Source of the DNA: Vitrella brassicaformis CCMP3155
Taxonomy: Eukaryota; Protista; Chromerida
Assembly: GCA_001179505.1 (NCBI GenBank)
Contig: CDMY01000630.1
Span: 1-46,475, forward strand
Direction: 5' to 3'
Length of the DNA: 46,475 bases
Below are positions 2,118 through 46,475 of the stretch, piece by piece. The position numbers were made by a program, and so were the translations under genes. The notes below the pieces were generated by a model, which searched no databases, had not been told where the DNA came from, and worked only from the letters and a program-made list of their open reading frames with translations. Within the stretch, counting starts at the first letter, position 1, and every line of letters begins with the position of its first letter.

Positions 2118-3049
2118 TATAAGAACGCACGCATACACATTCCTTGTGTGCCTGTCCGGCTCCTTCAGCTGGTTTCGTCTCTCAAGAAGGCCTGAGGGTC
2201 CTCGCTCATCACACGCAAAACACCTCACGGTGGGCGAGAGATCCACCGATCGCTCGAGACACACACCATCCATTGCCTCTTCCGCTGTATGTGCGTGCAG
2301 GCTGAGTGAGATTGCAGAGCTTGCTGCGGCTGTCGCGGACTCTCCCTGCCCGGCCAGCGATGCCATCGTGCACCGCGGCAACCCCACTCCGTTCCAACAC
2401 ACCCACTCCACAGAGGTGCCCTCATCCACATCGGGCAATAGCGAGGACACGCCCTCAAGCACCAGCACCAGAAGCGAGAGGGAGCAAGCGTAGAAGGAGA
2501 GCTGAGACACATGCACTGCTGGGTGATCGCGTTGATACATCGGGCCGCATTATCATGTCTGTATTATTGGGTGCCTGGGTGTAGTCAGTAGCTCCCTTCT
2601 TTGGTTTGCTGGCAGACAATGGCCGGATTGATATTTGTGTGAAAGACAGTGCCGGAGACTGCGCGCGTGTGTGTGTGTGGTTGTTGCTGGGGGCGACGCA
2701 TCTATGTTGATAGGTGTGTGCGTGTGCCGTGGGTTGCATGCATACAAGGAGACGGCGGTGGCAGTGCTTATTCATTGACGCATTTCGTTCACTCACCCGA
2801 GTGACTGACTCAAGGCGCCAATCGTCTGGTATGCATCGATGTGAACTTTCTTATTTTAGTAGATACATGAACGGGCGACGAAGTTCGTCTAAGCATCAGT
2901 CGTATCAAGCAAGGAAAAGGGAACAATACATGTAGAAAACAATGGATTTAAGCGCTCGTTGGCTGCGAAAACATGTCGCACACTGCAAACAAGCGCGAGA
3001 CATCCAACATGACACACACTTTCACGAAATCCAGGTCCAGCCAGCCACC

Positions 3050-6000
3050 TCACAGCCCCGGAGCGGGGCTGGTGTGGGGCCTGTAAGGCCCGCGGCTGAC
3101 GAAGTCCTCCGGAAACGCGTTGGCTCTCCGTGGCCCTCTGGCGGCCGCCGCGCGCTGTGCACGACTCGCCACTTGAAACGCGTTGTGCTTCATCAACTCG
3201 ACGGACAGAAGCTGGCTCCAATGGTTGACGATGCTCTCTCGAAAAGCTCTGTCCTCCTCCGTGGGAATGGATGTGGGGCGAGGCTTTCGCTTGGCGAGCA
3301 TCTTGAGAAGTCCATGGTCTTCTCTCCCCATCTGCAGAATGTCTCCGCAGGGAGAGGCATGAAGCGGAAGCCGGCTGCTTGGGTGGTTGGTCTATACTTG
3401 TCGATCTTGTCTTTCTCCGCAAGCTGAGCCGCCTTGCCACCAGGAAGCTGTGCGCCACGCCGGTTGACTGTCCGGTGGAAGGGAATGGGGGAGTTGTCAG
3501 GGCGGCAGGGGTGGGCGACGGTGACGTCGAGCAAATAGTCGCTGCCGTCGATCACACAATAGATGTCCATGCGCTGGTTGTTGGGGTTGTCGTCAGGCGG
3601 GGTGATGCCGAGGCTGTGCAGAGACACCTCCACATTGGAGGGAACATCTGCCTCAGCCAGGATGCGAACAAACAAATTGCGCATGTTGTTGTGTCTCGTG
3701 ACCCGCTCACGGCCGGTGTGACACACGTAGAAGTGATCGCCAAACTTGTCGACCTCCCCGCCGCAGATGCATCGCTGCGAGACGGTTGCATGCGGGAGGG
3801 CAATGCCGAGACACCCGGCGACGGCATGGCGATAGTGGAAGTTGTTTAGTGTCTTGCTATCGCTGGAAGGGATTGCTGACAGCCAACCAGACGAAAGAGG
3901 CCCTTGGCAGCTCAAAAGACGGGCGCGGGCTGTGCTGTTGGGGGGGAGGGAGTTGAAGAGCTCGTTGAAGTGGAACTTGTGCAGTTGATCGGTCAGGCGC
4001 TGCTGTAGCCGAACCTGCGGTCTCGAGATAAGGTCCTGCAGGGAGGGGAGGGAGAAGGAGGGGCCGACCACCTCAGAGATGGCAGCGAGGGCGGGGACTA
4101 CAGCTTGAAGCCAGGATAGATCCAGGAGAGCAGCGGGCCTACCTTGAGGCATCCATGGTGCTCCTCGGAACCGGCTAGAGACATCAGATGCCGTCACACC
4201 GATCGAGCACAGAAAAGCCGCACGGGCAATCGTGGATGCAGAGACAAGGCCAAAACCTTCCAGCCGAATGGGTAGCTGCACTTGTGTAGAGACCGAGGCG
4301 GGGAAGTCGCCGGGAAAGCGGAACATGCGCCTGAATGCCGTGATAATGGCGGCGTCATGTCGCTCGGCGGCTGCCAGGGAGACATCGGATTCTGAGGGAA
4401 GGAGGCGCAGCCAATAGTTCAGCCGGGGGGATGCACAATAGCGGAGAAGAAGGCCTGAGCCTTGTAGTCCCTTCTGGGCAAAAGTCACGATTGCGTCGAG
4501 CAGCGGCTGGTGGCTGCTGGTGATCTTCTCGAGGCTGTGCTGGATGAAATAGTCGCCGCCAAGCGGGCAGCCGAGGACAGTGATGCCTTCAGTGGAGCAC
4601 TTGACGCCGGAAGCAGCGATGTCCGCCGGGATGTCGGAGTCTTGTTGCCAGCGGGGGCTCCATGCAGCACTCTTGTCTCTCCGCAGCCTCAACTTCTTCT
4701 CGGCCAGAAGCTGTTCGGCTCTGTCCACATACCCCGTAACACGTGTCTCGTCCAGTTCACCATCGATGTCGTCCATGAACGCACTAACGAAGTCGTCGGG
4801 GAACTCCTCTTGCAGTTTGACGAGGGCGGGGTGGAGGCCCAGGCAGAAGAGGAAAGGGCCCGCCGCGTCGCCTTGCTGGGTGCCCTCCTGACTGAGAATT
4901 GTCTCTGTGCGTCCGTCCTTCATGCGATACCATAGTTCAGCCGGGGTGCCGTAGAACTGCCAGAAGAAATCGACAAAGGACGGCCACTTTATGCCGAGCT
5001 CGTCGAGGATCGACTGACGGTCGATGCTGTTGAAGGCGTTCTTGCAATCCAAAGTCACCAAAACCCGTCTACCGGAATCATCGCGGCGTGTCTCCATGTA
5101 GGTCTGACAGGCCCTGAAAGTCTTCTCTCCGCCTGCCAACGTACCGACCGCAAACTGTAGAGGCGAGAAGTCCTCCTCAAAGGCAAGCTTGTTCTCCATA
5201 CAAACTGCCTTCGTCACCCATCTCCAAAGCACATCACCCATAGCAATCGGCCGGACACCACCGTTGTCTTTCATCAGAGCGAAAAGGCGGGCGGCCGAAA
5301 GAGTTGTAGTGCAGCTGTCCGGCATGTTACCAGCGAGCATCCGGCTGACAAGGGAGGGCAGGGGGACGGTCTCGTCTTCTGCCGAGGCGTCACCCTCTCC
5401 CATGCAGGCACGAAGATGCTCATACCGCCATCCCGTGGGGCCGGCTGCGGAACCTCGCGGCGTCGTCTTGAGGGCAGCCAGTAGAACTCTGGGCGGGACC
5501 GTGAGAGGGNNNNNNNNNNNNNNNNNNNNNNNNNNNNNNNNNNNNNNNNNNNNNNNNNNNNNNNNNNNNNNNNNNNNNNNNNNNNNNNNNNNNNNNNNNN
5601 NNNNNNNNNNNNNNNNNNNNNNNNNNNNNNNNNNNNNNNNNNNNNNNNNNNNNNNNNNNNNNNNNNNNNNNNNNNNNNNNNNNNNNNNNNNNNNNNNNNN
5701 NNNNNNNNNNNNNNNNNNNNNNNNNNNNNNNNNNNNNNNNNNNNNNNNNNNNNNNNNNNNNNNNNNNNNNNNNNNNNNNNNNNNNNNNNNNNNNNNNNNN
5801 NNNNNNNNNACCGTGAGAGGGAGGGGCGGTCCATCTGGGCCGTTCTGGGGCTGCGGCTTTGTGGGGAGCGGAGCTGCAGGGTGTAGGTCCTTGAGCTGCT
5901 GGAGTGTCGCCGCCGTCGCTGGAGCGACCTTGGCGGCCGTCAGCCGTCTTGCCGCATGCGACAGCTCTCCCTGTCTCACCAATCTCTCTGCTGCTCGCAA

Positions 6001-6900
6001 CTTGATCTCCTCCAGAGATGGCTCAGACACACCGTCCACTGGTCCATCGCCACGTGGAGCGAAGACGTGGCGACCCTGTTCAGCAAAATTCCTGGACTCG
6101 TCGAGTAATCTTTGCCACTCTCCAGCCCAGAACCGCTTGAAGCGAGAACCCCACTTGCGGCGGCCGCCCGTCCCGCCGCGATTCATCGGGAAGAGCAGCA
6201 TAGTCGGCACGAAAATAGCTATCAGGCAGCCGACATCCAAGTCCTCCTCATCCTTCACATACTTCTCGGTGGTATCCACCACCATCCTCAGCGACTCCCG
6301 GACACACTCAGGTATGCGGGATATGGTGCGAGACGCCCAGCTTGAAGTGGTCATCCCGTTGCTCGGCGGTGAGGCTGCGGAGGTAATCAAGCCCACGCTG
6401 CGGGAAAATTCCTCTCGAGCGAAACCAGTGGGAATCGTGGGGCGGGTCTGGTGGTGGACCAGGGGGAGGTGGAGGTCCTCCTCCGTGTGGGGGCAGCCCA
6501 TTGCCGCCCGAGTCACCATCTCCTGCCCCGCCATCTCCCGGGTCACCGGGTGGCGGGCCGGACGGCGGCGGGGGTACGAATCCGCCTCCACCTCGAGCAC
6601 CTCGGGCGCCTCGTGAGGCTCCACGTGCTCCTCTACCGCGACCCGTCCCCCGAGCTCGGCGCGCCGGCGGAGTGAATGTGTTGTGCTTTTGCGAGTAGAA
6701 GTAAGCGTCGTTGCCCCGCATGCGCCGGAATGACGAAGCAGACCGATACGCATGCTGTGCAACAGCAAAAGCCTTCTCTGCAAGAATGCCAGCTCTGCGA
6801 TTGCGCAGGCGGATATAGAAGGACAGCTGGCGACTGGGGGGGGTAGAGTTTTGCATATCCTCAGAGGGTTCTGGCCTACCCTTGTAGGGTTTTTTACGCC
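3050..6900 (-). pseudogene. Reverse transcriptase + CCHC-type zinc finger + restriction-like endonuclease polyprotein, with two apparent frameshifts
   Basis: Motifs SAAGPTGWRYEHL, GGVRPIAMGD, LDCKNAFNSIDR, GTQQGDAAGP (~4870), AFMDDI (~4770), CICGGEVDKFGDHFYVC...RHN (~3700-3775), RMDI...DVTV and ETFCRWGE. A 1-nt loss near 3310 moves the C-terminus (LKMLAKRK...PGL*) into ORF 3050-3331. A probable shift near 6330 joins the Gly/Pro-rich frame of ORF 6308-7039. The start is not resolved. Confidence 0.92.
5510..5809. other. 300-N scaffold gap, probably spurious (flanks overlap by 12 nt)
   Basis: ACCGTGAGAGGG lies at both 5498-5509 and 5810-5821. Merging them gives the continuous peptide GPPLPLTVPPRVLL. 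Confidence 0.8.
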
Positions 6901-7549
6901 TGCAAGCTTGAGTCTGAAGTGGTTTTGATAGCCTCCTTCCCGTATGAACTGTCTGACTTCCCTTTGTTGAGCGTGACGCTTCTATGTGCGCATTCTTGTG
7001 CGCATTGTTGTATGCATGCCTGTACCAGTGTTTGCGCATTTTGGGGGCATTGTCATTGTTGTGCGCATGCCTGTGCCTGTGTATGCATTCTTGTGTGCAT
7101 TGTCATTGTTGTGTGCATGCCTGTGTCTGTGTGCGTATTCATGGTTTAGTGTTTTTTCTGTTGCTGATGCTCTGCGGTTCCGCCTGGACACGTCAAGACG
7201 TTGTCGTCCAGCAGATCTTCTCGCCGACAAGGCTCCAGAGAAACCTCATCGAGAATGGCTCTTCCGATCTCAAGCACGCTCCCATCCGTCATTCACAAAG
7301 TAGTCAGCGTCAGCGCGTCAGTGAGTGAAGCCAATGGGCGCGGTGAGCGCTTCTACGGAAGGGAATCTCTCCCATCCAACCTGACTGACTGACTGGCCTA
7401 GCTCCTGTCTGTCAAGTTACATAGCGCTTGGAAGCTCAGGCAGGGAGCAACGGATATGTGACGTACTCCGATCGGACGCTTCTTGCCCAACGGGCAAGCC
7501 AAAACAAGAGCAAAAACGTCAGGCCCGGTTGCATTGTTGACGAAATCAT

Positions 7550-8265
7550 CGTAGGACGACCAGAGGCCGGTCTAGAGTCTCACCCATGAAGGACATACAT
7601 GCGTGACTGCTTCACCAAAATCATGACTGCAATATGAAAATGAATATGGCACTCTTTGTTCCCTGCAGGAAAATGACATTCATGCATCAAGATGGCACTC
7701 AAAAAGGACGAAAGGGGCGCACATGAGGTCTGAAAGGGCCTCGACTTATCATACCCTCATTGCACACTCCACGAAACCGGGCCCTTGAGTATCAGCAGCT
7801 GTATGTGCTCGACTTGACACTTGATATGTATTAAACCTCATCAATCCAATAGACAAGACTTGTGCCCAATGATTTGTTCTTGTGAATCTCTCACGAAAAG
7901 AAGCCTCTTCATCACATGAAACTCCTGTAGGTAGCCTTTTTCTCTTTGCCAAATCCTTCAATAGAGCCACTGTCTTCTTTCCCCATCTTCCAAATGTCTC
8001 TACTGCAAGAGGGACAAACTTATGGTCAGCACGAATGACATTAGCCGCATATTTCGCTTCCTTCACTTCCTCCGCATGTCTCGCTGCATCACCACCAGGT
8101 TCTGTCGCTCCGCGCCGATCGACTTGTCGCCAATGAGGGTTAGAGGCGTCAGGGCGGGTAGGATAAGTAACAGTGACATCAGCGGAGTATCCCTGTCCAT
8201 CCACGACGAAAAAGAGGTCCATGCGTTGATGATTCGGGTCGCTGTCTAGTGGAGTGACTCCGATG
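7550..8265 (-). mobile_element. 5'-truncated 3' end of a diverged, more AT-rich CRE subfamily (RLE domain + 3' UTR)
   Basis: ORF 7749-8222 (RMDLFFVVDG..ADVTVTYP..FVPLAVETFGRWGKKT..LAKRK..NHW) aligns by eye with the RLE C-terminus of the main element. The left boundary is approximate. Confidence 0.85.
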
Positions 8266-8687
8266 CAACGAGCTCTTCAACTCCCTCCCGCCCGACGGCA
8301 GAGCCCGCGCCCGTCTCTTGAGCTGCCAAGGGCCTCTCTCGTCTGGTTGGCTGTCAGCGATCCCTTCCAGCGATAGCAAGGCACTGAACAACTTCCAGTA
8401 TCGTCATGCCGTCGCCGGGTGTCTCGGCATTGGCCTCCCGCACGCAACCGTCTCGCAGCGATGCATCTACGGCAAGGAGGTTGACAAGTTTGGCGATCAC
8501 TTCTACGTGTGTCACACCGGCCGTGAGCGGGTCACGAGACACAACAATATGCGCAACTTGTTTGTTCGCATCCTGGGCTGAGGCAGATGTTCTTCCAATT
8601 TGGAGGTGCCTCTGCACAGCCTCGGTATCACCCCACCCGACGACAACCCCAACAGCCAGCGTATGGACATCTACTGCGTGATCGATG
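8266..8687 (+). mobile_element. Internal fragment of the main CRE family, inverted orientation
   Basis: Closely matches the reverse complement of ~3550-3968 (ELFNSLPP..SCQGPLSSGWL..DKFGDHFYVCHTG..RMDIYCVID). It carries small indels near 8577-8600. Confidence 0.9.
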
Positions 8688-10058
8688 CTTCGCTGCTCCC
8701 TACCTGCAGGATAAGACCGATTGCCTGTGGAGCCGAGAGGGCGTGACTTAGGGCGACTCCCTGTAGATGCTCGTCTATACGAGCGACAGCCTTTCTCTCA
8801 TTCATGCCTTGCGAGATGCGTGCGCGGAGGAGGGATATGAGATAATCTCTGAATGGGCAGTGGGCGGGGTGCAGCCAGACAAGGATACGAAAGAAAACAG
8901 GCCATCAGAAGCCCACGGGAGGCCAATAGAAGCCAGTGATGAGCCATCAGAAGCGGGGAGGGATGATACATGTGTGTGTTCTGGTGTTGCTGGCTTTTAG
9001 AAGCGTATGTATGTCTGTACGTATGCATGTGTGGACGTGTTGTATCTCAGTATGCCTCCTCCAGCAACGATGCAGCAGATGATAATCAGTCAGACACATC
9101 CATCCAAGCACTAACTATATGTAGCCATTCAGAGGAATTCTAGTAAGCAACTCAAAATGTCGTTCCTTCCCCTTCGTCGCTTTCAGGCTGGTCGACGGAT
9201 GCCTCAAGGAATGATACCACCGGTAAGGAGGGGAGGAACAAAGGAAAGAAGCAAGGGGAAGAGGGAGGAAGGGAGGGAGAGACAGCACATCTCTTCGCGT
9301 TTCCGTCCATACACCCATCTGTCCAGCTCTCCTCCTCCTGTTCATCCATCGTGCGTGCCTTTCAGGGTATACGTCATCCCGCTGCCCCTCCTGGCCAAGC
9401 AGGTACAGCTTCTGCTGCTTCGATGATACCAACACCAGCAGGGGTACCAGCACAACAGCCGCCACCACAGGCGTGAGAGGAATGAAGATGATTGATTGGT
9501 TTGTATGCGGATGGATGTGTGTTATTACGGGAGCACTGGTAGAGAGAAAAAGATAGTGTCCCTTATTCGTGAACGCTGCGTGAATGGATTACGAATGTGT
9601 GTCTGTATGTGTGTGTATCTGGACTGACTTCGAAAATACGCGATGTAACTCTTGACTCACCCACACATGAAGAAGTCCAATATGCGAATAGTGACATAAC
9701 ACGCATGTCAAAAACACCACTGTCGACCGAAAAAAGTTCGCATTCATGTTGCCCTTGAGGCTCTTCGCCAACGCCAACAAACACACAAACTGCACAAAAA
9801 AGAGCGAGCAAAGCTTTTGCGAACATAAACAGTCCATGGCAGGCCACTATGGCTATAGACTCTGCAACGTACTTCATCATGGTGCACGTGAAGGAAAAAG
9901 ACAGCATAGATGTGACCTGATTTACGGACAAAACAGAAAACACCAACCAGATGAGGCTTCCGAAACACTCAACGTACACTACAAAAACGCGCGAAAGAGA
10001 CACACTGATGCAGCTCAGTGACTACAAAATCATACAACACCTTTCCATGTCAAGAGAA

Positions 10059-10694
10059 CTACACCTCTTCGCTTCCAACTATGTACGGAGAGGCCCTACC
10101 ACTGTGTCCAGGCGAGCCCTTGTCGCCTTTCTCACCCTTGTCACCTTTATCGCCCTTCTCACCCTTGTCGCCTTTCTCCCCTCGATCACCCTTCTCGCCT
10201 TTGTCGCCTTTATCGCCTCTGTCGCCTTGTGGTCCTTTCTCTCCAGCAGGGCGAATGAGGTCTAATAATGAACTCGCTATGAGCCCCATGGATGCACCAG
10301 CCACGCCACCCAGCCAAAGCATTGCAACCTTGTCTTGTCGCGTGACGTCGCGATCGATGATGGAAATCAACACATCCGAAGCGCCTTGCAGTGTGATCCG
10401 CAAGAGCGATATCACGTCTTGTGCATCCTCGAAGATGCCCAGGGCCTGCTCCCTTTCGAATACCGCACTGGCGTCTGGGACTGTGAAGTCGACTTTCTCG
10501 CTGGTTGCCAGTGCATAATGGACTTCTTTAAATCGTCCAGGGGGCAATGCTTCATCGAACGAGAAGTTCGATTGGACGATCGTCATATAGCCGAGGCGTG
10601 TCTCTGATAGCGGTCCATCTTGGTCTTTCGCAACATGGAAGTTGAGCCAGCCGCCAAAAGCTGGAAAAGATTCTTCATTGGGCGTGAGCACCAT
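10059..10694 (-). CDS. Intronless collagen-like repeat protein with a hydrophobic segment (virus/phage-like)
   Basis: 16 G-X-Y triplets, mostly GDK/GEK/GDR, at 10101-10244, preceded by hydrophobic VAMLWLGGVAGASMGLIASSLL. The frame extends upstream past a TAG near 10790, so it may be a longer, degraded gene. Confidence 0.7.
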   Translation of the reverse strand: MVLTPNEESFPAFGGWLNFHVAKDQDGPLSETRLGYMTIVQSNFSFDEALPPGRFKEVHYALATSEKVDFTVPDASAVFEREQALGIFEDAQDVISLLRITLQGASDVLISIIDRDVTRQDKVAMLWLGGVAGASMGLIASSLLDLIRPAGEKGPQGDRGDKGDKGEKGDRGEKGDKGEKGDKGDKGEKGDKGSPGHSGRASPYIVGSEEV

Positions 10695-15235: not shown

Positions 15236-16335
15236 CTGACAGAAACACAAGTGCATACGCAGAGAAGATGATCACATACATCCGTGGGGTGTGTGGGTCC
15301 GTCCGTTCGTACACACCCGGAAGTGGCTTCCCGACTGCCACCCATCCCGAAACACCTAGCTGCTTCACCGCGGCATAGAAGGAGACTTGACCCTACGCAT
15401 GCAAATCATGGGTGAGCCACACGATCACTCTTAGCGCTGTCGAGGTGTATTCAAGTAAGAGCGCCCTCACCTCCTCCTGCAGTCGAATGAGCAATGCCTC
15501 ATACTCTTCCCGATCTTCCTTGCCGTCATCGCTGCGTGAGGAGCTATTCGGCACTGTGCGGCTCTCACCGTGCGGCCATCTGAATGATGTGAATGGCATT
15601 AATGCACACACAGGGTGGCATGTCCCGCCATCCTCAGGCTGCCTTTGCGTGTATATATGTACCTGGCTGCATCAGCGGTCGCTGTCTGCCGCCTTGCGAT
15701 GAACCGATGGAGCGACACAAGGGGCGATGTAGAGGATTCGAGCACCTGATCCAGCCGCACACAGAAAGGGAAACCACACCATGAGCTAGCTAGATAGATA
15801 TATATCATCTTCCTGTCCACCCAACTAACCTGAAGACGTTTGGCATTGTGGCGATGCCCACCGATGACACTCACGGACGCCTGCTCTGGCCCTCCAGCGA
15901 TGAAGGCAGATCCGCTCAAGGCCCTCCCTTCGTGTGCGCGGCGCATCATCGCCATCTTCTTGTGTGACGTGCCGAGGGTCATGATGTGCATGACGCTCGT
16001 CAGGAGCACCCAAAGGACACATGTGAGGCGCGACGAGGCGGCTGGTCGCATGTCAACAAGACAGAAGCCGGTAACAGTGGCGCTGCGCATCTTGAGAGCC
16101 AAGGACGGACGAATGCGGCGAGTCGAGGCAAAGTCGGTGGTCACAGGGCCACGCGCCTGCCTGCACGTTACGAACACACACAACGAAATGGAGTCCATGC
16201 AGCCATGCATCTGAACCCATACTCACCGCTCTATCTTTCAGCAGCAGAGATGCGTCAGTCAGGATAGCCGAGATCTCGCAGAGAAGAGAAGTCATGGCGC
16301 GCTGCACCAAAAAACCGATGATCAGTTTCACGAAC

Positions 16336-17175
16336 AATACAACCGGGCCTGACGTTTTTGGCTGCGTGCTCGTGATGTTGCGTCTCGTAGATCGCGTCCC
16401 TGCCTTCTCAGCTTTGCTTTTTCGCCCTATGACTGCTGTACAACACTGCCAAGGGCCTGGCTGTCGGTTCCCTCACACCTGAATCGCCTATTTGCCTTCC
16501 TGGTATGCATGCGTGTGGAACACGGAAAGGGAACGAGGGCACGGAAATGGACATATGTGTGTGTTCGTGTGTGGGTCTATGCGTCGTCGATGTGCTGTTG
16601 TCGTGGTGTGGTGTGGCAGGTTGTTTTTCGCACTCTTCTGTCGCGCCGCTGTTCCGTTTGGGTGCGCTGTACAACACTATGTGGTTCGCAAGCGTACACA
16701 CTGACTGGATGGCTAGCTTGTCAGTGACCATTGTGTTGGTGGTGTTCTGTTGATGTGGTGACTATGGCAGGTTGTTTTCCGCACCCTCTGTCGTGTCGCT
16801 TTTCGTTCGGGTGCACTTTTGCTATCACTCCCTGGTGCGCACCAAGACAGACAGAAAGACAGACACACCGACCACATACACCACACTGTCTGTGTGGCTG
16901 CCTGGCTGTGCATGCAATGTCCTCAGACGTGTTGTTTGCTTTTGCCGGTCGTCTGCGAGTTTGGCAGCGGCAGTTCCCTGCCTTGTCAACGCTCACAGCG
17001 CCCATTGGTTGAGCTCGCTGCATGACCGGCACTGCATAGAAGACCTTCACGTCTGACATCTATTCATTCAATCACTCTCGAGTCCCCGCGCTTGAGTCGA
17101 CCTGTGTTGATCTAGACCATCCCCACCGAATGGTCTAAGCAGAGCACAAGACAACCAACTACAGCCTCATCAGAA
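16336..17175 (+). repeat. Dispersed ~830-bp repeat A, copy 1
   Basis: Colinear with 21539-22369 (roughly 85% by eye). Starts AATACAACCGGGCCTGACG and ends ACAGCCTCATCAGAA. Contains an internal ~150-bp dimer (TGGCAGGTTGTTTT.. at ~16614 and ~16765) and a TAGACCAT/ATGGTCTA hairpin at 17112-17137. Confidence 0.9.
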
Positions 17176-18213
17176 GTCCACATCCTGGACGTCCGGAGCA
17201 ATTCGTCACTTACCGAGTGTGACGTTCGCTCTCTGGCCAACGTGACGGGAGCCTCCATCGTTCTCTGCGTCCTTGCCGAGGAACAGTTCCAGGACCTCAC
17301 CATTCCGCTCTTGCTTCGCGAGCATGAGACAGTTCACCTGGAAGGCGGACGTGTGCAGCGGCCCAGGACAGCCCTGGAGCCCTTCCCTCCCCCGCCACCG
17401 GTTCTCTTCATTTTCTACGCTGGCAACCACTTCATGTCCCTGCTGCCGTTGGATGCGAGTGATCCTGCAGCGGGTGCGGAGGCCGCAGGCGACTGGTATC
17501 GATGTGGTGAGTGGCCGTGCGCCTGTGTGGAAACTGCGAGAGATGGTGGCCATGCTGCGGGCCCGTCGGTTGCCCTCGGGAATCCATCGGAGGCACGTCC
17601 CCCCGCTGCCATCGATGGACCGACCCGCCTTGTGCCGCCCCCCTCTCACCCGGAGGGCGTCACCAACCGAGGTACCTCACCCCGCTCGGACCTCCGACGC
17701 CAGCGTCGTACCGGACGACAACGGCAACGCCGCACTCGCAGGCGTTTGCAAGAGGGAGCAGTCACTTCGATACGTAAGGACTTGGAGGATGAAGTGGAGT
17801 CCAGCGGCCCGGAACATCGACACGACCAGGACACCTACATGGAATTGGTCAGTAGCGATGCAGCCCCGCCCATAGGAAACGACCAAGAAGTCGACGGGAC
17901 AAACGAACTGGGAGACACGGTGGATGGACGTGGTTGGATGGATATTGCGGAGGATCGCGATTTGACAGTGGGCGTGGGAGGGGCAAGTGCCAGCCGGCAA
18001 CTCACCCCGGATGAGCTGATATCTCGCGAGGGCCGCGGACCCTCGGGTGCGGATCCACTTTCGGCGGCGGGGCCCAATAGCAACGATCGCCCCACACTTC
18101 CCCCTGATCGGCTCGGCGCTTTGGGTGACATGACGTCGCGCGAGGGCTATGACCCGGACAACCGTGGCCCGCCCAAGGGCCTTCGAGACTTGGACGACAT
18201 CCTTGATGCTTGA
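17173..18213 (+). pseudogene. 5'-truncated ORF with the C-terminal half of an OTU-like cysteine protease and a low-complexity tail
   Basis: ECDVRSLANVTGASIVLCV and PVLFIFYAGNHFMSLLP resemble the OTU helix and His motifs. There is no start codon or catalytic Cys segment. The stop TGA overlaps the first satellite monomer. Confidence 0.45.
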
Positions 18214-21200
18214 CATTCATCATATACACGCACTCCAAGTCCACACATGCCTGCGCACCCCTGCGCACAGAGACATTCATGATATACACGCACTCCAAGT
18301 CCACACGTGCATGCGCAGGGGTGCGCACGCAGACATTCATCATATACACGCACTCCAAGTCAACGCATCGTCGTGCACAGAGACATTCATGACATACACG
18401 CACTCCAAGTCCACACGTGCATACGCAGGGGCGCGCACAGAGGCATTCATGACATACACGCACTCCAAGTCCAGACGTGCATGCGCCGGAGTGCGCACAG
18501 AGACATTCATGATATACACGCACTCCAAGTTTACACGTGCCTGCGCAGGGGTGCGCACAGAGGCATTCATCATATACACGCAGGTGTGCGCACAGAGACT
18601 TTCATGACATACACACACTCCAAGTCCACACGTGCATGCACAGGTGTGCGCACAGTGACATTCCCCATATACACGGACTCCAAGTCCACAGACGTGCATG
18701 CACAGGTGCGCACAGGCACAGAGACATTCATGATATACACGCACTCCAAGTCCACGCGTGCATGCGCAGGGGTGCGCACAGAGACATTCATGATATACAC
18801 GCAGGTGTGCGCACACAGACATTCATGATATACACGCACTCCAAGGCCACGCGTGCATGCGCAGGGGTGCGCACAGAGACATTCATGATATACACGCAGG
18901 TGTGCGCACAGAGACATTCATGATATACACGCACTCCAAGTCCACGCGTGCATGCGCAGGGGTGCGCACAGAGACATTCATGATATACACGCAGGTGTGC
19001 GCACACAGACATTCATGATATACACGCACTCCAAGTCCACACGTGCCTGCGCAGGGGTGCGCACAGAGACATTCATGATATACACGCAGGTGTGCGCACA
19101 GAGAGGCATTCATGACATACACGCAGTCCAAGTCCACACGTGCATGCGCAGGTGTGCGCACACAGACATTCATCACATACACACACTCCAAGTCCACACG
19201 TGCATGCGCGGGAGTGCGCACAGAGACATTTATCATATACACGCACTCCAAGTCCACACGCAAGTCCACACGTGCATGCGCAGGTGTGCGCACAGAGACA
19301 TTCATCATATACACGCACTCCAAGTCCACACGTAAATGCGCATGTTCATGCGCAGGTGTGCGCACACAGACGTACATCATATACACACACTCCAAGTCCA
19401 CACGTGCATGCGGACGTGCATGCGCAGGTGTGCGCACACAGACATTCATGACATACACGCACTCCAAGTCCACACGTGCCATGCACTTCAAGTCCACACG
19501 TGCATGCGCAGGAGTGCGCAGACAGACATTCATCATGTACACACACACTCCAAGCCCAAACGTGCATGCGCAGGTGTGCGCACACAGACGTTCATGCGCA
19601 CACAGACGTTCATCATATACACACACTCCAAGTCCACACGTGCATGCGCAGGTGTGCGCACAGAGACATTTATCATATACACGCACTCCAAGTCCACAAG
19701 TGCATGCGCAGGTTTGCGCAGCTGTGCGCACACAGACATTCATGACATACACGCACTCCCAGTCCACACGTGCCATGCACTTCAAGTCCACACGTGCATG
19801 CGGACATGCATGCACAGGTGTGCGCACACAGACATTCATCATATACACACACTCCAAGTCGACACGTGCATGCGCAGGTGTGCCCACACAGACATTCATC
19901 ATATACACACCAAGTCGACACGTGCATGCGCAGGTGTGCGCACACAGACATTCAGTACGTGCACACACTCCAAGTCGACACGTGCACGCGCAGGTGTGCG
20001 CACACAGACATTCATTATATACACACACTCCAAGTCGACACGTGCACGCGCAGGTGTGCGCACAGAGACATTCATCATATACACACACTCCAAGTCGACA
20101 TGTAGGTACGCAAGGCTGCGCGCACTCCAAGTCGACACGTGCATGCGCAGAGGTGCGCACAGAGACACTCATAAGATACACACACTCCAAGTCGACACGT
20201 GCATGCGCACACCTACACACTCCCAGTCGACGCGTGCATGCGCAGGTGTGCGCACAGAGACATTCATCATATACACACACTCCAAGTCCACGCGTGCATG
20301 GACATTCATGATATACACGCACTCCAAGTCGACGCGTGCATGCTGCATGCGCAGGTGTGCGCACAGAGACATTCATCATATACACACACTCCAAGTCGAC
20401 GAGGTGTGCGCATACAGACATTCGTCATATACACGCACTCCAAGTCGACACGTGAATGCGCAGGGGTGCGCACAGAGACATTCATGATATACACACACTC
20501 TAAGTCGACACGTGCATGCGCAAGGGTGCCCGTACACACGTTCATTATATCCACAGAATACAACCGGGCCTGACGTTTTGGCTGCGTGCTCGTGATCTTG
20601 CGTCTCGTGGATCGCGTCTTGCCTTCTCAGTTAGCTTTTTCGGCCCATTGCTGCTGTACAACACTGCCAAGGGCCTGGCTGTCGTCTCCCTCACACCTGA
20701 ATCGCCCACCTGCCTTCCTGGTATGCATGCGTGTGGAATACTGAAAGGGAACGAGGGCACGGAAATGGACGCATATGTGTGTGTTCGTGTGTGGGTCTGN
20801 NNNNNNNNNNNNNNNNNNNNNNNNNNNNNNNNNNNNNNNNNNNNNNNNNNNNNNNNNNNNNNNNNNNNNNNNNNNNNNNNNNNNNNNNNNNNNNNNNNNN
20901 NNNNNNNNNNNNNNNNNNNNNNNNNNNNNNNNNNNNNNNNNNNNNNNNNNNNNNNNNNNNNNNNNNNNNNNNNNNNNNNNNNNNNNNNNNNNNNNNNNNN
21001 NNNNNNNNNNNNNNNNNNNNNNNNNNNNNNNNNNNNNNNNNNNNNNNNNNNNNNNNNNNNNNNNNNNNNNNNNNNNNNNNNNNNNNNNNNNNNNNNNNNA
21101 TCATATACACGCACTCCAAGTCCACACGTGCATGCGCAGGTGTGCGCACAGAGACATTCATCATATACACACGCTCCAAGTCCACACCTGCATGCGCACA

Positions 21201-21538
21201 CCTACACACTCCCAGTCGACGCGTGCATGCGCAGGTGTGCGCACAGAGACATTCATCATATACACACACTCCAAGTCCACGCGTGCATGGACATTCATGA
21301 TATACACGCACTCCAAGTCGACGCGTGCATGCGCAGGTGTGCGCACAGAGACATTCATCATATACACACACTCCAAGTCGACGAGGTGTGCGCATACAGA
21401 CATTCGTCATATACACGCACTCCAAGTCGACACGTGAATGCGCAGGGGTGCGCACAGAGACATTCATGATATACACACACTCTAAGTCGACACGTGCATG
21501 CGCAAGGGTGCCCGTACACACGTTCATTATATCCACAG
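18212..21538 (+). repeat. 60-bp tandem satellite array 1 (includes gap-associated duplication 20559-21099)
   Basis: Consensus ACATTCATCATATACACGCACTCCAAGTCCACACGTGCATGCGCAGGTGTGCGCACAGAG. The period of 60 is visible as column alignment from 18241. Many monomers are truncated. Confidence 0.97.
20800..21099. other. 300-N gap with duplicated flanks (~20120-20799 vs ~21100-21781)
   Basis: The satellite end plus the first 240 bp of repeat A recur at an offset of ~982 with minor differences. Probable contig overlap. Confidence 0.8.
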
Positions 21539-22369
21539 AATACAACCGGGCCTGACGTTTTGGCTGCGTGCTCGTGATCTTGCGTCTCGTGGATCGCGTC
21601 TTGCCTTCTCAGTTAGCTTTTTCGGCCCATTGCTGCTGTACAACACTGCCAAGGGCCTGGCTGTCGTCTCCCTCACACCTGAATCGCCCACCTGCCTTCC
21701 TGGTATGCATGCGTGTGGAATACTGAAAGGGAACGAGGGCACGGAAATGGACGCATATGTGTGTGTTCGTGTGTGGGTCTGTGCGTCGTCGGTGTGCTGT
21801 TGTCGTGGTGTCGTGTGGCAGGTTGTTTTTCGCACTCTGCTGTCGCTCCGCTGTTCCGTTTGAGTGCACTGCACAACACTATCTGGTTCGCAAGAGTATA
21901 CACTGACTGGATGGCTGACATGTCAGCGACCATTGTGTTGGTGGTGTTCTGTTGGTGTCGTGACTATGGCAGGTTGTTTTTTCGCACCCTCTGTCGTGTC
22001 GCTTTTCGTTCGGGTGCACTTTTGCCACCACTCTCTGGTGCGTATCAAGACAGACAGAAAAGGCAGACAGACGCACCAACCACACAGTGGCTGCCTGGCT
22101 GTGCATGCAATGTCCTCAGGCGTGTTGTTTTGCTTTTGCCGGTTGTCTGTAAGTTTGGCAGCGGCAGTTCCCTGCCTTGTCAACGCTCACAGCGCCCATT
22201 GGTTGAGCTCGCTGCATGACCGGCACTGCATAGAGGACTTTCACGACTGACGTTCATTCGTTCAATCACTCTCGGGTCCCCGCGCTTGAGTCGACCTGTG
22301 TTGATCTAGACCATCACCACCGAATGGTTTAAGCAGAGCACAAGACAACCAACTACAGCCTCATCAGAA
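21539..22369 (+). repeat. Dispersed ~830-bp repeat A, copy 2
   Basis: Same termini and order as 16336-17175. An ~80-nt core (TTGGCAGCGG...CACTGCATAGA) is identical in both copies. Confidence 0.9.
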
Positions 22370-23823: not shown

Positions 23824-25861
23824 GAGTGAGGGAGAGGTGAGATGTGTGTTGCTTTTGTCCAGTGTGCTGTGTGAGGCCTACCTTCATTCTGGGCCTCCGT
23901 ATTCGTTTTGTGCGTGGGGTGATTGGTGCCATGTGGTGTCCGCATACACAGCAGATAGATGAGGTGGTGGTCACTGCTGCCAGCCAGGCGGCCACTCTTT
24001 CTGACGAGACGGACGGACGCATGAAGGACCATGTCGTTTTTGACGGTGAGTGCTTTGGTGTCAATGGAGCGTCGTGCGTGTGTGTGACGATTGAACGATA
24101 CACTCTTTCTGCATGTCCCCTAGTCCCTCGATGCATCAATCAATCAACACTCAATCAACCTCACCGATCCATCCATCCATCCATCAACCGCATGGAATGG
24201 TTTTGCCCTTCCTGCCTTTCTCTACATGAGACAGCCATGTGATGAAGTGGGAGAAAGGGAAAGAAATCCACACATTGCAGGCAGCCAAAAGGGAACCCAC
24301 TGGCACATCCATTACAGGCGCGAGCACTCGCTGCACACGTCCGCTACATATGCATCGATCAATCTGAATGGCCTGTAGGCATGTGTCTGTGCTCGTATGT
24401 ATATGCGTCTGCGATTATCGATCGTACTGTCATGTATCATCAAAGCAGTCGTCTCGCTTCGTCCACCACAGGAGGAAGCATCACCATTCTTCATGTCTGC
24501 GCGTCACCACATATCACCACACACACAACGAACACGTCACATGACAAAGAAGTGATTGGTTCTGTCTGCCGGGCAGCTGTGTGATCATCCTGTCGCATCG
24601 CTGTGTGTCGCTACTGAGATGAAAAATGCTGCCAACAGCGAGGAAGGACTACAAAACACTAGTGACAGCCAGCAAGTACTAATAGAAACACCATGGCACC
24701 ACATTCAGCCATTGCTATCGAAAAACAGCACAAGTAGCAAACCGGACACGAGAGCCTCACTGTGACGCTCAGCAGCACGTGTGCATGCAGAGAAAAAAGC
24801 CACGGCATTTGAGCCACCTGCATGCAGGGAAGACAGAATCGGACGACAAACGCTCGGCAGCAGCATCCATGTATGTATGTATGTTTGTTTGTCACAGATA
24901 CACGCAAACACGTGCACACCGAACGAAAGAAAAAGGCTCGCTCTAGCACTTGTGTGCACGTATGTGTATGAAGTACACACGTGTGGCATCGTGCCCGTCT
25001 GATTGAACTCGACTCATGCAGAGAAAGAAGCAGGCCACACGCCGACAGAGAAAGAGAGAGAGAGGGGGAAACGCAATAAGACTTGAACACGATCTCTCAC
25101 GCACACACAAGAGAGACACATGCATGCATGGCAGATGAGGGGGAATCACGCTAAAAGTGCGGTGGATTAGCACTGTGAATGAGTGATTTCACATACACAC
25201 GCGTGTGAGCGTCGGTGCGCGGTATGCAGCACAGTGTCTGCCTGTTTTCTTGCCTCTATTTATGTCCTTTGTTCATGTGAATGCGTATTATCAACTGCCC
25301 CTTGGGCGTGGGTGTGTGTTTGTGATGCTTTATGCTTCATGAGTGCAGCATTCACACACACACACACACAGGTGTATGGGCAATCCGCACGTCAACCAGG
25401 TCTTCATGCAGATTGTGACGGTTACGCACACATGCAGCATTGAGTCAGCAAGCACTGCACACATGCATACGTGAATCGGATGACAACAACACAACACCGT
25501 GACAAACAACACAATTGTCGAAGTGGCCGTGTGGTCGTGACACACACACACATCCCCCCCACGCCACTCTCAACCAGTCATATAGGCAGTCATAGATGAG
25601 CCCCTGCATACGACTGCATAAGGTCGTTGCACATTGCAGCGATTCAGCGATTCTCAGCGATACATACTCTCACTGAGATGCACACGTTTCTGCAACCACA
25701 GCCTCATCAGAAGCTGCACTCAGCTAATGCCGCTTCGGTGTCGGGGTCGAAGTCAACGTGGCGAAGACGAGGCAAGATAAGAAGGAGAAGAAGACAAGGA
25801 GAGGAGAAAGGAGACGATGCATTAGAGAGAGATCAGCGATAGTGGTCTACGTGGTGAGATA

Positions 25862-41681: not shown

Positions 41682-42127
41682 CCCCCCCACCTCCATTCCC
41701 ACGGAGGAGGACGCAGCTTTCCGGGAGAGCGTCATCAACGATTGGAGCCAGCTCCTGTCCGTCGAGCTGATGAAGCACAACGCGTTCCAAGTGGCGAGTC
41801 GTGCACAACGCGCTGCGGCCGCCAGAGGGCCACGGAGGGCCAGCGCGTTTCCCGAGGACTTCGTCAGCCGCGGGCCGTATAGGCCACACACCAGCCCCGC
41901 TTCGGGGCTGTGAGGTGGCTGGCTGGATCTGGATGTTGTGTGTGTGTGTTTTGTGTGTCTATCGTGATGCATGTCTCACGCTTGTTTGGAGTGTGCGACA
42001 TGCATTTGTTTGCAGTCAATGAGCGTTGTTCATTGGCTTTGCATGGTTGTGCTCCCTTTTGCTTGCTTGGTACGGACTGATGCTTAGACGAACTTCGTCG
42101 CCCGTTCTATGTGTTCACTGTAAACGG
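41682..42127 (+). mobile_element. 5'-truncated CRE insertion (446 bp) with an 11-bp target-site duplication
   Basis: Homologous to the reverse complement of ~2846-3280. Flanked by TTTCACATGGC at 41671-41681 and 42128-42138. Confidence 0.92.
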
Positions 42128-43313
42128 TTTCACATGGCTACTCTGGATATTCACTGCCATCACATCATCGACACCAGTGGGTTCCCGACGTCCAATAGTC
42201 ATCGGCCGTCGACGAGGCACCAGCACATCGCCTCTCGGCTTAAGCCAGCATAGTTTGCAGAGACACTGGTCGCCCTGCAGCAGGCAACAACCGCCAATGC
42301 TGTGGATGGATCTGTCACATCTTTCAGTGGACGCCCTCTTATTCAGCTTGGATCGGTGCTCAGCGCACTTGGCTTGGTTGTCAACGACAACGCCTCGATA
42401 CGACAGGAGGTTTGGGGAACAAGGGTGTGTGCTCTCCAGCTTGTCGTCCTGGAGAGATATGCACAGTACAAGATGAAACGGGTTTTCTTGTCGCGACCTC
42501 AGTTTGCGTGTCGGTGTATTGAGAGGGGATGCAAGACTGACGGGGACGGGAGTTGTGTGCCGCGGTCTACGTCAATGGCTGACTTGCCAATGCTTAACGA
42601 GACGCTAGCACAATCAAGAAAGGGCTCTCCAAGACCGAAAGTAGGAGAAAGCGAGGCCAGTTCACTGGTGCCTGGATGATGAGCAATCCAATACAGAGTT
42701 ATCTTGTGTATTTTTGACTGAAATCACAGGGAGACGTCACAACGATCGTCAAATGTCTCACACTGTATTAGTTATCTAGGCAGACACGGATACTACCATC
42801 AGCTGTAGCCCGGCCCCCAGTCTCCGAAGAGATGTTTTCCTCTCCACAGCGTCACCGCCCTTGTCTGAGGGCGCCATCGGGTCCGTCTCGTCGTGACGGA
42901 CCTGGCGACACCTTTTTCGCCGTTTCTTGTACCCAAGTCTGCCCCGGCACCGCGCCGTCCCCCTCGTTCGAGCTGCCGCCTGCCCAGTGCAAAGCACTTC
43001 GGTGGCAGCCCGGCTCGACGTTCCGTGCCTCGTCCGCGCCTTACCGACCCCGCGAAAGGCCTGGTGGCCCGTGTGGCGTTTGGGAGCCGCCTGGAGGCCT
43101 CGAGACTAGCCGTGCGCCAGTGTAACCGTACATTGCGTGCCTGAGGACGTCCCTGCCATGCCGTGAGCCTGCTTGGGTCTAAGAGACACCGCAGCCGGCC
43201 GTGTGCCGGTGTCGAGCGTGGTTGTGGGGGGAGAGAGTGCTGCGACGGGCCGTGAGCCTGTGCAGCTTGGCCGTGTGCCTGAGGACTTGCCCATACCGGC
43301 CGTGCGCCGGTGT

Positions 43314-46300
43314 CTATTGATCCTGCACACAGGTTCCAAGGCGACACGGGGCATGCGCTGGTGTGCACACAGGGTCATTCATTATATGCACACACTCCAA
43401 GTCGACACGGGCATGCGCAGGTGTGTGCATACAGACATTGATCCTGTACACACACTCCAAGGCGACACGGGGCATGCGCAGGTGTGCGCATAGGATCATT
43501 CATTATATACACACACTCCAAGTCGACACGGGCATGCGCACATGTGCGCACACAGACATTCGTCATATACACAGGTTCCAAGTCGATACGGGCATGCGCA
43601 GGTGTGGCACAGAGACATTGATCCTGCACACAGGTTCCAAGGCGACACGGGGCATGCGCAGGTGTTCACACAGGGTCCTTCATTATATACACACACTCCA
43701 AGTCGACACGGGGCATGCGCAGGTGTGCGCACAGAGACATTCATTATATACACACACTCCAAGTCGACACGGGTATGCGCAGGTGTGCGCATATAGACAC
43801 TCGTCATATACACACGTTCCAAGGCGACAGGGGTATGCGCAGATGTGCGCATACAGACATTCGTTTACACGTTCGAAGTCGACGCGGGCATGCGCACAGT
43901 GCGCATAAAGACATGGATCCTTTACGCACACTCCAAGTCACACTCCAAGTCGACACGGGGCATGCGCAGGTGTGCGCATATAGACATTCGTCATATACAC
44001 ACGTTCCAAGTCGACAGGGGTATGCGCAGGTGTGCGGACAGAGACATGGATCCTGTACACACACTCCAAGTCGACACGGGCATGCGCAGCTGTGCGCATA
44101 TAGACATTCGTCATATACACACACTCCAAGTCGACAGGGGTATGCGCAGGTGTGCGCACAGAGGCATTGATCCTGTACACACATTCAAAATCGACACGGG
44201 CATGCGCAGGTGTGCGCACAGAGACATGGATCCTGTACACACACTCCAAGTCGACACGGGGCATGCGCAGGTGTGCGCACAAAGTCATTCATTATATACA
44301 CACACTCCAAGTCGACGCGGGCATGCGCAGGTGTGCGCATACAGACATTCAGTATATAGAAACACTCCAAGTCCACGCGTGCATGTGCAGGTGTGCGCAC
44401 AGGGACATTCATGACATACACACACACCAAGTCGACACGTCCATGTGCAGGTGTGCGCACAGGGACGAAATACTCCAAGTCCACGCGTGGATGCGCAGGT
44501 GTGCGCACAAAGACATTCATGACATACACACACTCCAGGTCCATGCGTACATGCGCAGGTGTGCACACAGGGACATTCAGTATATAGGAACACTCCAAGT
44601 CCACGCGTGCATGCGCAGGTGTGTGCGCACAGGGACATTCAGTATATAGAAACACTCCAAGTCCACGCGTGCATGCGCAGGTGTGCGCACAGAGATACAC
44701 ACACTCCAAGTCCACGCGTGCATGCGCAGGTGTGCGCACAGAGACATTCAGTATATACACACACTGCAAGTCCAAACGTGCATGCGCAGGTGGGCGCACA
44801 GGGACGAAACACTCCAAGTCCATGAATGCCTGTGTGCGCACACCTGCGCATGCACGTTTGGACTTGGCGGACTTGGCGTATGTGTATATGATGAGTGTCT
44901 GTGTGCGCACACCGGCGCATGCACGTTTGGACTTGGCGTGGGTGTATCTGATAAATGTCTATGTGCGCATACCTGCGCATGCACGTTTGAACTTGGCGTG
45001 GGTGTATCTGGTGAATGTCTGTGTGCGCATACCTGAACTTGGCGTGGGTGTATCTGGTGAATGTCTGTGTGCGCATACCTGTGCATGCACGTTTGGACGT
45101 GGAGGGTGTGCACATGAAGAATACCCCTGTACGCACACCGGCGCATGCTCGCGTTGAATTGATGATGAATGTCTGTGTGCGCACACCTGCGCATGCCCGT
45201 TTGGACTTAGCGGACTTCGCGTATGTGTATATAATGAACGTCTGTGTGCGCACCCATCCCTGCGCATGCACGTGTCGACTTGGAGTGTGTGTGAACGTCT
45301 GTGTGCGCACCCATCCCTGCGCAGGCACGTTTGGACTTGGTGTGTTTGTAGATGATGAACGTCTGTGTGCGCACCCATTCCTGCGCATGCACGTGTCGAC
45401 TTGGAGTGTGTGTATATAATGAACGTCTGTGTGCGCACCCATCCCTGCACATGCACGTGTCGACTTGGAGTGTGTGTATATGTCTGTGTGCGCACACCTG
45501 CGCATGCACGTGTCGACTTGGAGTGGGTGTATCTGATGAATATCTATCTGTATGCGCACACCTGCGCATGCAGGTTTGGACTTGGAGTGTCTGTAGCTGA
45601 TGAGTGTCGCTGTGCGCACACCTGCGCATGCACGTATGGACTTAGGGTGTGTGTATCTGATGAACATCTGTGTGCGCACACCTGCGCATGCACGTGTCGA
45701 CTTAGAGTGGGTGTACCTGATTAATGTCTCTGGCAGGTTTGGACTTGGGGTGTGTGTGGCTGATGAATGTCTGTGTGAGCACACCTGCGCATGCACGTAT
45801 ATGATGAATGTCGCGTGCACGTTTGGACTTAGGGTGTGTATATGATGAATGTCTGTATGCGCACACCTGCGCATGCACGTGTCGACTTAGAGTGGGTGTA
45901 TCTGATGAATGTCTGTGTGCGCACACCTGCGCATGCACGTTTGGACCTGGGATGTATGTGGCTGCTGAACATCTGTGTGCGCACACCTGCGCATGCACGT
46001 GTCGCCGTAGAGTGGGTGTACCTGAGGAATGTCTCTGGCAGGTTTGGACTTGGGGTGTGTGTGGCTGATGAATGTCGCTGTGCGCATACCTGCGCATGCA
46101 CGTTTGGACTTGTAGTGTGTATATAATGAATGTCTATGTGCGCACACTTGCGCATGCAGGTTTGGACTTGGAGTGGGTGTACCTAATGCATGTCTCTGTG
46201 CGCACCTGCGCATGCACGTATATGATGAATGTCGCATGCACGTTCAGACTTGGGGTGTGTGTATCTGATGCATGTCTCTGTGCGCACACCTGGGGACTTG

Positions 46301-46475
46301 GGGTGTATGTATCTGATGGATATCTGTGTGCGCACACCTGCGCATGCACGTGTCGACTTAGAGTGGGTGTATATGATGAATGTCTGTGTGCGCACACCTG
46401 CGCATGCACGTATATGATGAATGTCGCATGCACGTTTGGACTTGGGGTGTGTGCATCTGATGAATGTCTGTGTGC
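43314..46475. repeat. 60-bp tandem satellite array 2, same family as array 1, with an orientation switch at ~44822
   Basis: Monomers read CATTC..CTCCAAGTC..TGCGCAGGTGTGCGCAC up to 44822. After that they read as the reverse complement (TGAATGTC..GTGCGCACACCTGCGCA..GACTTGG) to the window end. Confidence 0.97.

Follow-up and report, generated by a model that had tools for sequence, protein, structure and literature searches.

Of the photosynthetic relatives of apicomplexan parasites, Vitrella brassicaformis is the closest with a compact genome. In a 46,475-bp stretch of the CCMP3155 genome (hereafter the window), two short motifs, M1 and M2, recur in a fixed order and on a common strand, once ahead of a reverse transcriptase (RT) open reading frame and again in copies of a longer repeat, repeat A. 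An earlier note took the pair for a reusable promoter/leader module, that is, a cassette exchanged between an autonomous retroelement and a satellite-carrying family. Is this what the motifs are, and if not, to what do they belong? M1 is the conserved beginning, and M2 a conserved middle part, of two short mobile repeats that are related to each other and that we refer to as G and A. Judged by their sequences, the ∼365-bp G and the ∼840-bp A (formerly repeat A) form a pair of sister families that appear to be lineage-specific to V. brassicaformis. The published description of the CCMP3155 assembly reports only ∼1.5 Mb of transposable elements, without family-level description (PMC4501334).

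Both motifs were found where they had been reported. M1 (AACAATRCAACCGGGCCTGACGTTTT) occurs without mismatch at 7513-7538 (minus strand) and 16333-16358 (plus strand), and with two mismatches at 20554-20579 and 21536-21561 (both plus strand). Exact copies of M2 (CGCTCACMGCGCCCATTGG) are present at 7331-7349 (minus strand) and at 16990-17008 and 22184-22202 (both plus strand). Shuffled sequence yielded no match to M1 in 100 shuffles and a mean of 0.05 matches to M2. Order and strand are indeed the same throughout the window, and the spacers, previously given as ∼180 versus ∼650 bp, are 182 nt in one case and 650 and 641 nt in the others; local alignment of G against A spacers scored no better than shuffles, in line with the claim that they are unrelated.

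The complete CCMP3155 assembly (72,700,666 bases in 1064 contigs) was then used to determine whether the motifs co-occur genome-wide, as the earlier note had proposed to check. M1 has 49 matches with at most three mismatches and M2 has 50 with at most one, and the reversed patterns, used as controls over the whole genome, gave none. A same-strand M2 is located downstream of M1 in 34 of the 49 M1 sites, at a spacing that falls into two classes, ∼165 nt in the G family and ∼620-960 nt in the A family. Pairs with the wrong order or strand number only three, and most of the M1 sites without a partner adjoin an N gap or the end of a contig, or have a mutated M2. Because all matches fall within G or A repeats, M1 and M2 are not common host-promoter motifs, an outcome that would have spoken against a shared module.

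The boundaries of the repeats are sharp. In the 26 copies compared, the sequence 5' of AAT(G/A)CAACC differs from copy to copy and pairwise homology begins there; in all families the onset lies 0-3 nt 5' of AATRCAACC, homology stops at ..CAGAA(AA), and the flanks are unrelated. M1 is the exact 5' terminus, M2 an internal block, and a further block, M3, the 3' terminus. G starts with (TG)AATGCAACCGGGCC, carries M2 at +165 and ends in ..ATCAGCTACAGAAAA at ∼365 bp, its copies being 91-99% identical to each other. A starts with (AC)AATACAACCGGGCC, carries M2 at ∼+650, holds an internal duplication of ∼95 bp and ends in ..CTACAGCCTCATCAGAA at ∼840 bp. When G and A are aligned, three blocks only are recovered, namely the 5' 37 nt, ∼70 nt around M2 and the 3' 38 nt. 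The scores of the first two were each matched by 0 of 500 shuffles, and that of the weaker 3' block (M3) by 6 of 500. Between these blocks the two families are unrelated, the intervening sequence having been enlarged via internal duplications.

A fourth common block, M4 (the ∼40 nt after M3; GCTGCACTCSGCCAATACCGC...), is kept behind both G and A at nine loci, including window positions 25713-25749, where the junction of M3 with M4 is the same as that behind complete A and G copies at the eight other loci. Internal sequence beyond M4 is variable. Truncation is one-sided, with ∼5 copies truncated at the 5' end for each one truncated at the 3' end, and remnants of the M3 end alone, 20-37 nt long, exist; the 20-nt A terminus has 24 genomic matches with at most one mismatch, ∼10 of them without an A body. 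The sites of the latter kind are C240:118240, C337:95175, C476:16460, C517:116, C603:27120, C620:59210, C651:22316, C850:153890, C244:133952 and C419:74433. Among the genome-wide M1 matches, ∼14 G copies have CAACTGGG in place of CAACCGGG, and ACG and ATG alternate just 5' of the repeat. The excess of CpG-to-TpG changes in G copies suggests methylation-linked decay.

What had been described as the 5' leader of a CRE element is one of these G copies (Table 1). Over its whole length it is 74-84% identical to more than 35 other G copies. As reference for block conservation only, a majority-rule line of the non-coding 365-bp repeat was derived from 17 G copies; to this line the window copy is 81% identical overall, whereas its M1 and M2 reach 92-100%. 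When window positions 7560-6700 (minus strand) were used as a genome query, G copies matched over 7535-7154 only, the following 319 bp (7153-6835) had no match, and a different repeat matched over 6834-6700. The latter 165-bp repeat (6670-6834) was found in eight places (C613 twice, C272, C541, C364, C359, C466 and C795), seven loci without RT, and homology there extends on both sides. Its junction with the RT element reads ..CATTCACT followed by CCGCC.

Table 1. Features of the window that bear on the origin of M1 and M2.
Feature	Position	Strand	Basis or remark
Diverged stand-alone G copy	7154-7537	-	Whole-length homology to more than 35 G copies; flanks unrelated to theirs
M1, 5'-terminal block of the G copy	7511-7538	-	Exact match; 92-96% conserved
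M2, internal block of the G copy	7316-7388 (core 7331-7349; inverted CCAAT)	-	92-100% identical to G majority
M3, 3'-terminal block of the G copy, end ..CAACAGAAAA	7154-7195	-	G homology stops here; weakly alignable to A 3' end
Unique sequence separating the G copy from the following repeat	6835-7153		No other genomic match
Third repeat family (unrelated), 165-bp fragment	6670-6834	-	93-96% identical elsewhere
5'-truncated RLE-type (R2/CRE-like) non-LTR retrotransposon	2854-6669	-	RVT_1; boundaries from many copies
A repeat, complete	16333-17176	+	M1 16333-16360, M2 16990-17008, M3 17156-17175
Fragment of LINE upstream ORF region ('OTU-like ORF' 17242-18213)	17178-18212	+	Homology to full LINE copies
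Partial A copy at N gap	20557-20799	+	Probable assembly duplicate of 21539-21781
A repeat, complete	21539-22369	+	M2 22184-22202, M3 22350-22369
M3 (A type, one mismatch) followed by M4, without upstream A body	25693-25749	+	Junction of M3 with M4

The RT element itself is a LINE with an RVT_1 domain and a C-terminal CCHC plus nuclease-like motif, and its best PDB matches are R2 proteins. This LINE family is represented at eight loci by nine other stretches, whose alignment to the window starts precisely at 6670 and runs to ∼2854. On the 5' side of the point equivalent to 6670, these copies are homologous to one another, and not to the window, over at least 2.35-2.6 kb. Because they continue 5' in this way, the window RT copy is 5'-truncated at 6670. 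Neither M1 nor M2 is present in the 5' extension, both are absent from the 5' ends of the longest LINE copies (L030, L031 and L032), and none of the nine stretches has a G module upstream. Matches to G and to the LINE 5' region share one contig only, on which G is located downstream and in opposite orientation. M1 was also considered as a target site of the LINE and rejected, as the LINE adjoins M1 nowhere. The N run at 5510-5809 is an assembly gap from which no sequence is missing, and other LINE copies bridge it with an overlap of ∼11 bp.

The interpretation of M1 and M2 as a promoter/leader cassette that serves the autonomous RT element as its 5' UTR and has been exchanged with repeat A draws on the position of the G copy upstream of the RT ORF and on the same strand in the window. 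However, LINE homology ends at 6670, a foreign 165-bp repeat and 319 unique bp intervene, neither G nor A stands upstream of the other LINE stretches, and G is a separate family of at least 40 copies. We consider this interpretation very improbable. The supposed leader is a solo copy of G, of old age, and is separated by 484 bp from a LINE that lacks its 5' part, in a neighbourhood that is a stack of nested repeat fragments, and no exchange between the autonomous element and a satellite-carrying family was seen. What survives of the original proposal is a discrete mobile unit with ordered blocks, shared by two families; its role as a retroelement leader does not.

The differing cargo said to follow the module has to be revised as well, since it consists in part of mere neighbours of solo copies. 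The 'OTU-like ORF' gave no OTU Pfam match. It is part of a LINE fragment that begins at 17178, directly after the A-repeat terminus, and is 80-88% identical at the nucleotide level to the 5' parts of full LINEs (87.8% to L030 1391-2425), the ORF itself having 67-80% amino-acid identity to four full LINE copies. Two inverted repeats of the window, I1 and I2, are also fragments of this LINE family, both in inverted orientation and from the RT C-terminal region (7719-8692 and 41685-41956).

As to repeat A in the window, the copy at 16333-17176 is collinear with 10 other copies (79-91% identity) over its entire length, and the flanks are unrelated. Around the N run at 20800-21099, a 100%-identical duplicate is present at a spacing of 982 nt (20344-20643 equals 21326-21625). 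The partial A copy at 20557-20799 has thus probably arisen in assembly, and the window likely has two A copies, not three. An arrangement of A, ORF, satellite and A as a single LTR element was rejected, given that the ORF derives from the LINE, that one A is probably a duplicate made in assembly, and that the two A copies, 91% alike, are no closer to each other than to others. The satellite, with a 60-bp period (units such as CACTCCAAGTCCACACGTGCATGCGCAGG..), occupies 18175-20555, 21118-21535 and 43227-46475 of the window in both orientations, and adjoins G or A copies at several loci; it was also observed at L002, L005, L016 and L017. A separate 9-bp periodic repeat at 10099-10242 would encode, on the minus strand, a collagen-like run of G-x-K/E triplets.

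Apart from solo copies, G also forms the direct terminal repeats of small G-I-G composites at five loci or more (C590, C764, C564, C651 and C778), and the spacing of M3 suggests one more at C26. The internal region I, of ∼515 bp, is taken as non-coding and contains short mechanical ORFs. At one locus (L006), a 1.3-kb G-I-G sits within an ORF that belongs to a different LINE family, and the reading frame resumes exactly (..RKHS K YGTE..). Because the frame resumes at the same residue, G-I-G moved as one unit, and no more than 2 bp of the target were duplicated. When 21 G/A blocks were searched locally for empty sites, this was the only one. In four of the five composites, the two G copies are sisters, with identities of 98.9, 99.0, 98.3 and 96.1%; between different composites, G diverges by 3-8%.

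A check for target site duplications, suggested earlier for repeat A, was carried out on 27 units. Flanking 4-, 5- and 6-mers matched in 7, 1 and 0 cases, against 5.6, 1.8 and 0.1 in mismatched controls, and so no fixed duplication of 4-6 bp was found in these units, nor at the empty site of L006 (at most 2 bp). At C778, a G composite adjoins the final 37 nt of an A repeat in inverted orientation (L036 5439-5475), and its flanks can be read as a 4-bp duplication (TCTG), the sole such case among the units examined. Some arrangements are explained better by a tandem or circular unit than by LTR-I-LTR: G-I-G-I' (L039), I-G that lacks an upstream G (L028) and A between internal sequences (L020).

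These observations also bear on a non-mobile origin, in which the repeats would be duplicated host regulatory regions, such as the promoter of a gene family, with CCAAT and ACGT boxes. M2 does contain an inverted CCAAT, and TGACGT-type sites are found in M1 and in the body of G. Sharp boundaries between unrelated flanks, the presence of copies in both orientations inside other repeats and the insertion into a LINE ORF revealed by the empty-site comparison at L006 nevertheless argue against such an origin, as does the lack of a conserved gene downstream, and we give it hardly any credence.

We favor, with a probability of about 0.6, the reading that M1 and M2 are conserved blocks of sister mobile families G and A, which serve as LTR-like terminal repeats and are moved by enzymes supplied in trans. 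G and A would act as terminal repeats of the LTR type, with most copies being solo, and both ends would be regenerated from one template at each move. M1 and M3 may have been retained as termini that the mobilising machinery needs in cis. M2, an inverted CCAAT flanked by ACGT-core sites, is by its sequence the element's putative promoter/enhancer and may have been retained as such. The enzymes might be provided by a tyrosine-recombinase (YR) retroelement or, alternatively, by a LINE through target-primed reverse transcription. An integrase of the retroviral type is not inferred as the inserter because there is no fixed target duplication. The concerted sister G pairs correspond to LTR behaviour, with gene conversion as an alternative source.

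Alternatively, G and A could be SINE-like retroposons that have an internal promoter, start at M1 and end at M3, and are copied by LINE enzymes through target-primed reverse transcription, G-I-G then representing read-through transcripts from tandem master loci. Both the excess of 5' truncations and the M3-only remnants are expected from target-primed reverse transcription and not from solo LTRs. A 5' end that is sharp yet frayed by 0-3 nt, a fixed and A-rich 3' end, target duplications that are variable or absent (none at L006, possibly 4 bp at L036) and the abundance of RLE-type LINEs in the same genome are all consistent with this view. On the other hand, the 3' ends of G and A (..CTACAGAAAA and ..CATCAGAA) are unrelated to the LINE ends ..CGCCCGTTCATGTA of the families at the fetched loci; repeat A accordingly lacks the CRE 3' tail that the earlier note had asked about. 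No tRNA, 5S or 7SL head was detected in G or A (no Rfam match at E ≤1, no tRNA), and the T5 run directly after M1 would terminate RNA polymerase III. Furthermore, G1 and G2 of a composite are sisters and are not grouped by position. Taken together, we regard a SINE-like origin as unlikely, although by no means negligible. A reverse reading, in which M1 in reverse complement would be a tail like that of a LINE, was suggested by a faint by-eye likeness to ..CGCCCGTTCATGTA and was rejected; the forward sense of the repeats was kept because truncations remove the M1 side.

With regard to the enzymes on which the preferred LTR-like families would depend, a Phage_integrase search of the genome gave four matches, two of which are ORFs preceded by RNase H-like ORFs. 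At C1057, an exact 20-nt A terminus (M3) is located 20 nt past the stop codon of the YR ORF in an element with RNase H plus YR. After it comes a block of 61 nt, of which a second copy is found 7.3 kb upstream (L048 1501-1561 and L046 2678-2738). The two stretches, L046 (C1057:40991-45391) and L048 (C1057:34857-37917), delimit a retroelement of ∼7.4 kb with RNase H-like and tyrosine-recombinase ORFs. Related terminal blocks were observed in permuted or tandem order at C802, and three further YR loci are found at C499, C33 and C863. The A terminus is absent from the three other YR elements, and the C1057 element shares nothing beyond the 20 nt. A tentative proposal, which we consider doubtful, is that a tyrosine-recombinase retroelement moves G and A as miniature non-autonomous elements, with the M1 and M3 termini as its enzyme sites. 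Should it hold, the 20-nt M3, which occurs both behind the YR ORF and at module junctions, could be a site for the recombinase or its reverse transcriptase.

Two unclassified Vitrella repeat families now have exact ends, and a false link to a LINE has been corrected. For annotation, this means that copies of G and A need not be misread as LINE leaders or host promoters. G and A represent ordinary repeat biology with an unusual way of moving, and are of moderate value to transposon biology. The G element combines a miniature-LTR architecture and concerted terminal repeats with the lack of integrase, primer-binding site or polypurine tract hallmarks and of a target duplication. If the YR link were true, G and A would offer a tractable case of YR retroelements mobilising non-coding passengers, and an LTR-like, duplication-free, YR-dependent 'TRIM' in a chromerid alga would be undescribed in the DIRS order. 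If the link fails, they constitute another lineage-specific family of short retroposons.

How, then, do G and A compare with known classes of elements? With RLE-type LINEs (R2, CRE/SLACS/CZAR, NeSL) the likeness concerns the adjacent RT element, which has an RT and a C-terminal CCHC/nuclease region and finds its best relatives of solved structure among R2 proteins, whereas M1 and M2 are part of no portion of that element. SINEs and R2 SIDEs resemble G and A in being short, non-coding and interspersed, with 5' truncations, a defined 3' end and LINEs in the same genome. In contrast to these, G and A have neither a polymerase III head nor a 3' tail in common with the LINE families examined, and form the terminal repeats of composites.

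Several other candidates were considered and rejected. A retrozyme was prompted by CTGATGAG, which is present at the A terminus when the reverse strand is read, but a GAAA core is missing, and the G and A copies of the window gave no Rfam match to a ribozyme. A Helitron would have a 5' TC, a CTRR 3' end and an insertion site between A and T, none of which is present. A spliced-leader, snRNA or small-RNA gene as target or source was discarded as well, in view of the lack of Rfam or tRNA matches and of the unrelated flanks 5' of M1.

Members of the DIRS order (Ngaro/PAT/DIRS1) insert without target duplication and regenerate their repeats in each cycle, as G and A would, and RNase H plus YR elements exist in the genome, one of them with an exact A-type 3' terminus after its YR ORF. 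Repeats in this order are either split (A1...B1-A2-B2) or inverted with an internal complementary region (PMC4157794). Unlike these, the composites have plain direct repeats, and only 20 nt are common with the YR element; split or inverted repeats of the DIRS type were not found in the composites, in which the end of I is not repeated after G2.

The differences from TRIM/SMART elements and solo LTRs lie in the signals of replication and integration. G and A lack the 4-6-bp duplication, a tRNA-type primer-binding site, a polypurine tract and a terminal ..CA, and some occur in tandem (G-I-G-I'). Of 19 G copies, 15 have TG directly before AATGCAACC, whereas the repeat closes with ..CAGAAAA, not ..CA. 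No tRNA primer-binding site was found after M3 by its TGG start, the internal region beginning with GCTGCACTC, and pyrimidines predominate ahead of the 3' repeat, where a polypurine tract would be expected. The likeness, on the other hand, extends to the overall design: a short non-coding internal region between direct repeats of a few hundred bp, as in G-I-G at five loci, many solo repeats and promoter-like motifs in the repeat. The repeats of one element are also mutually closest, in four of five composites (96-99%), which gene conversion may also explain. The mode of insertion of G and A is duplication-free, and their architecture is TRIM-like.
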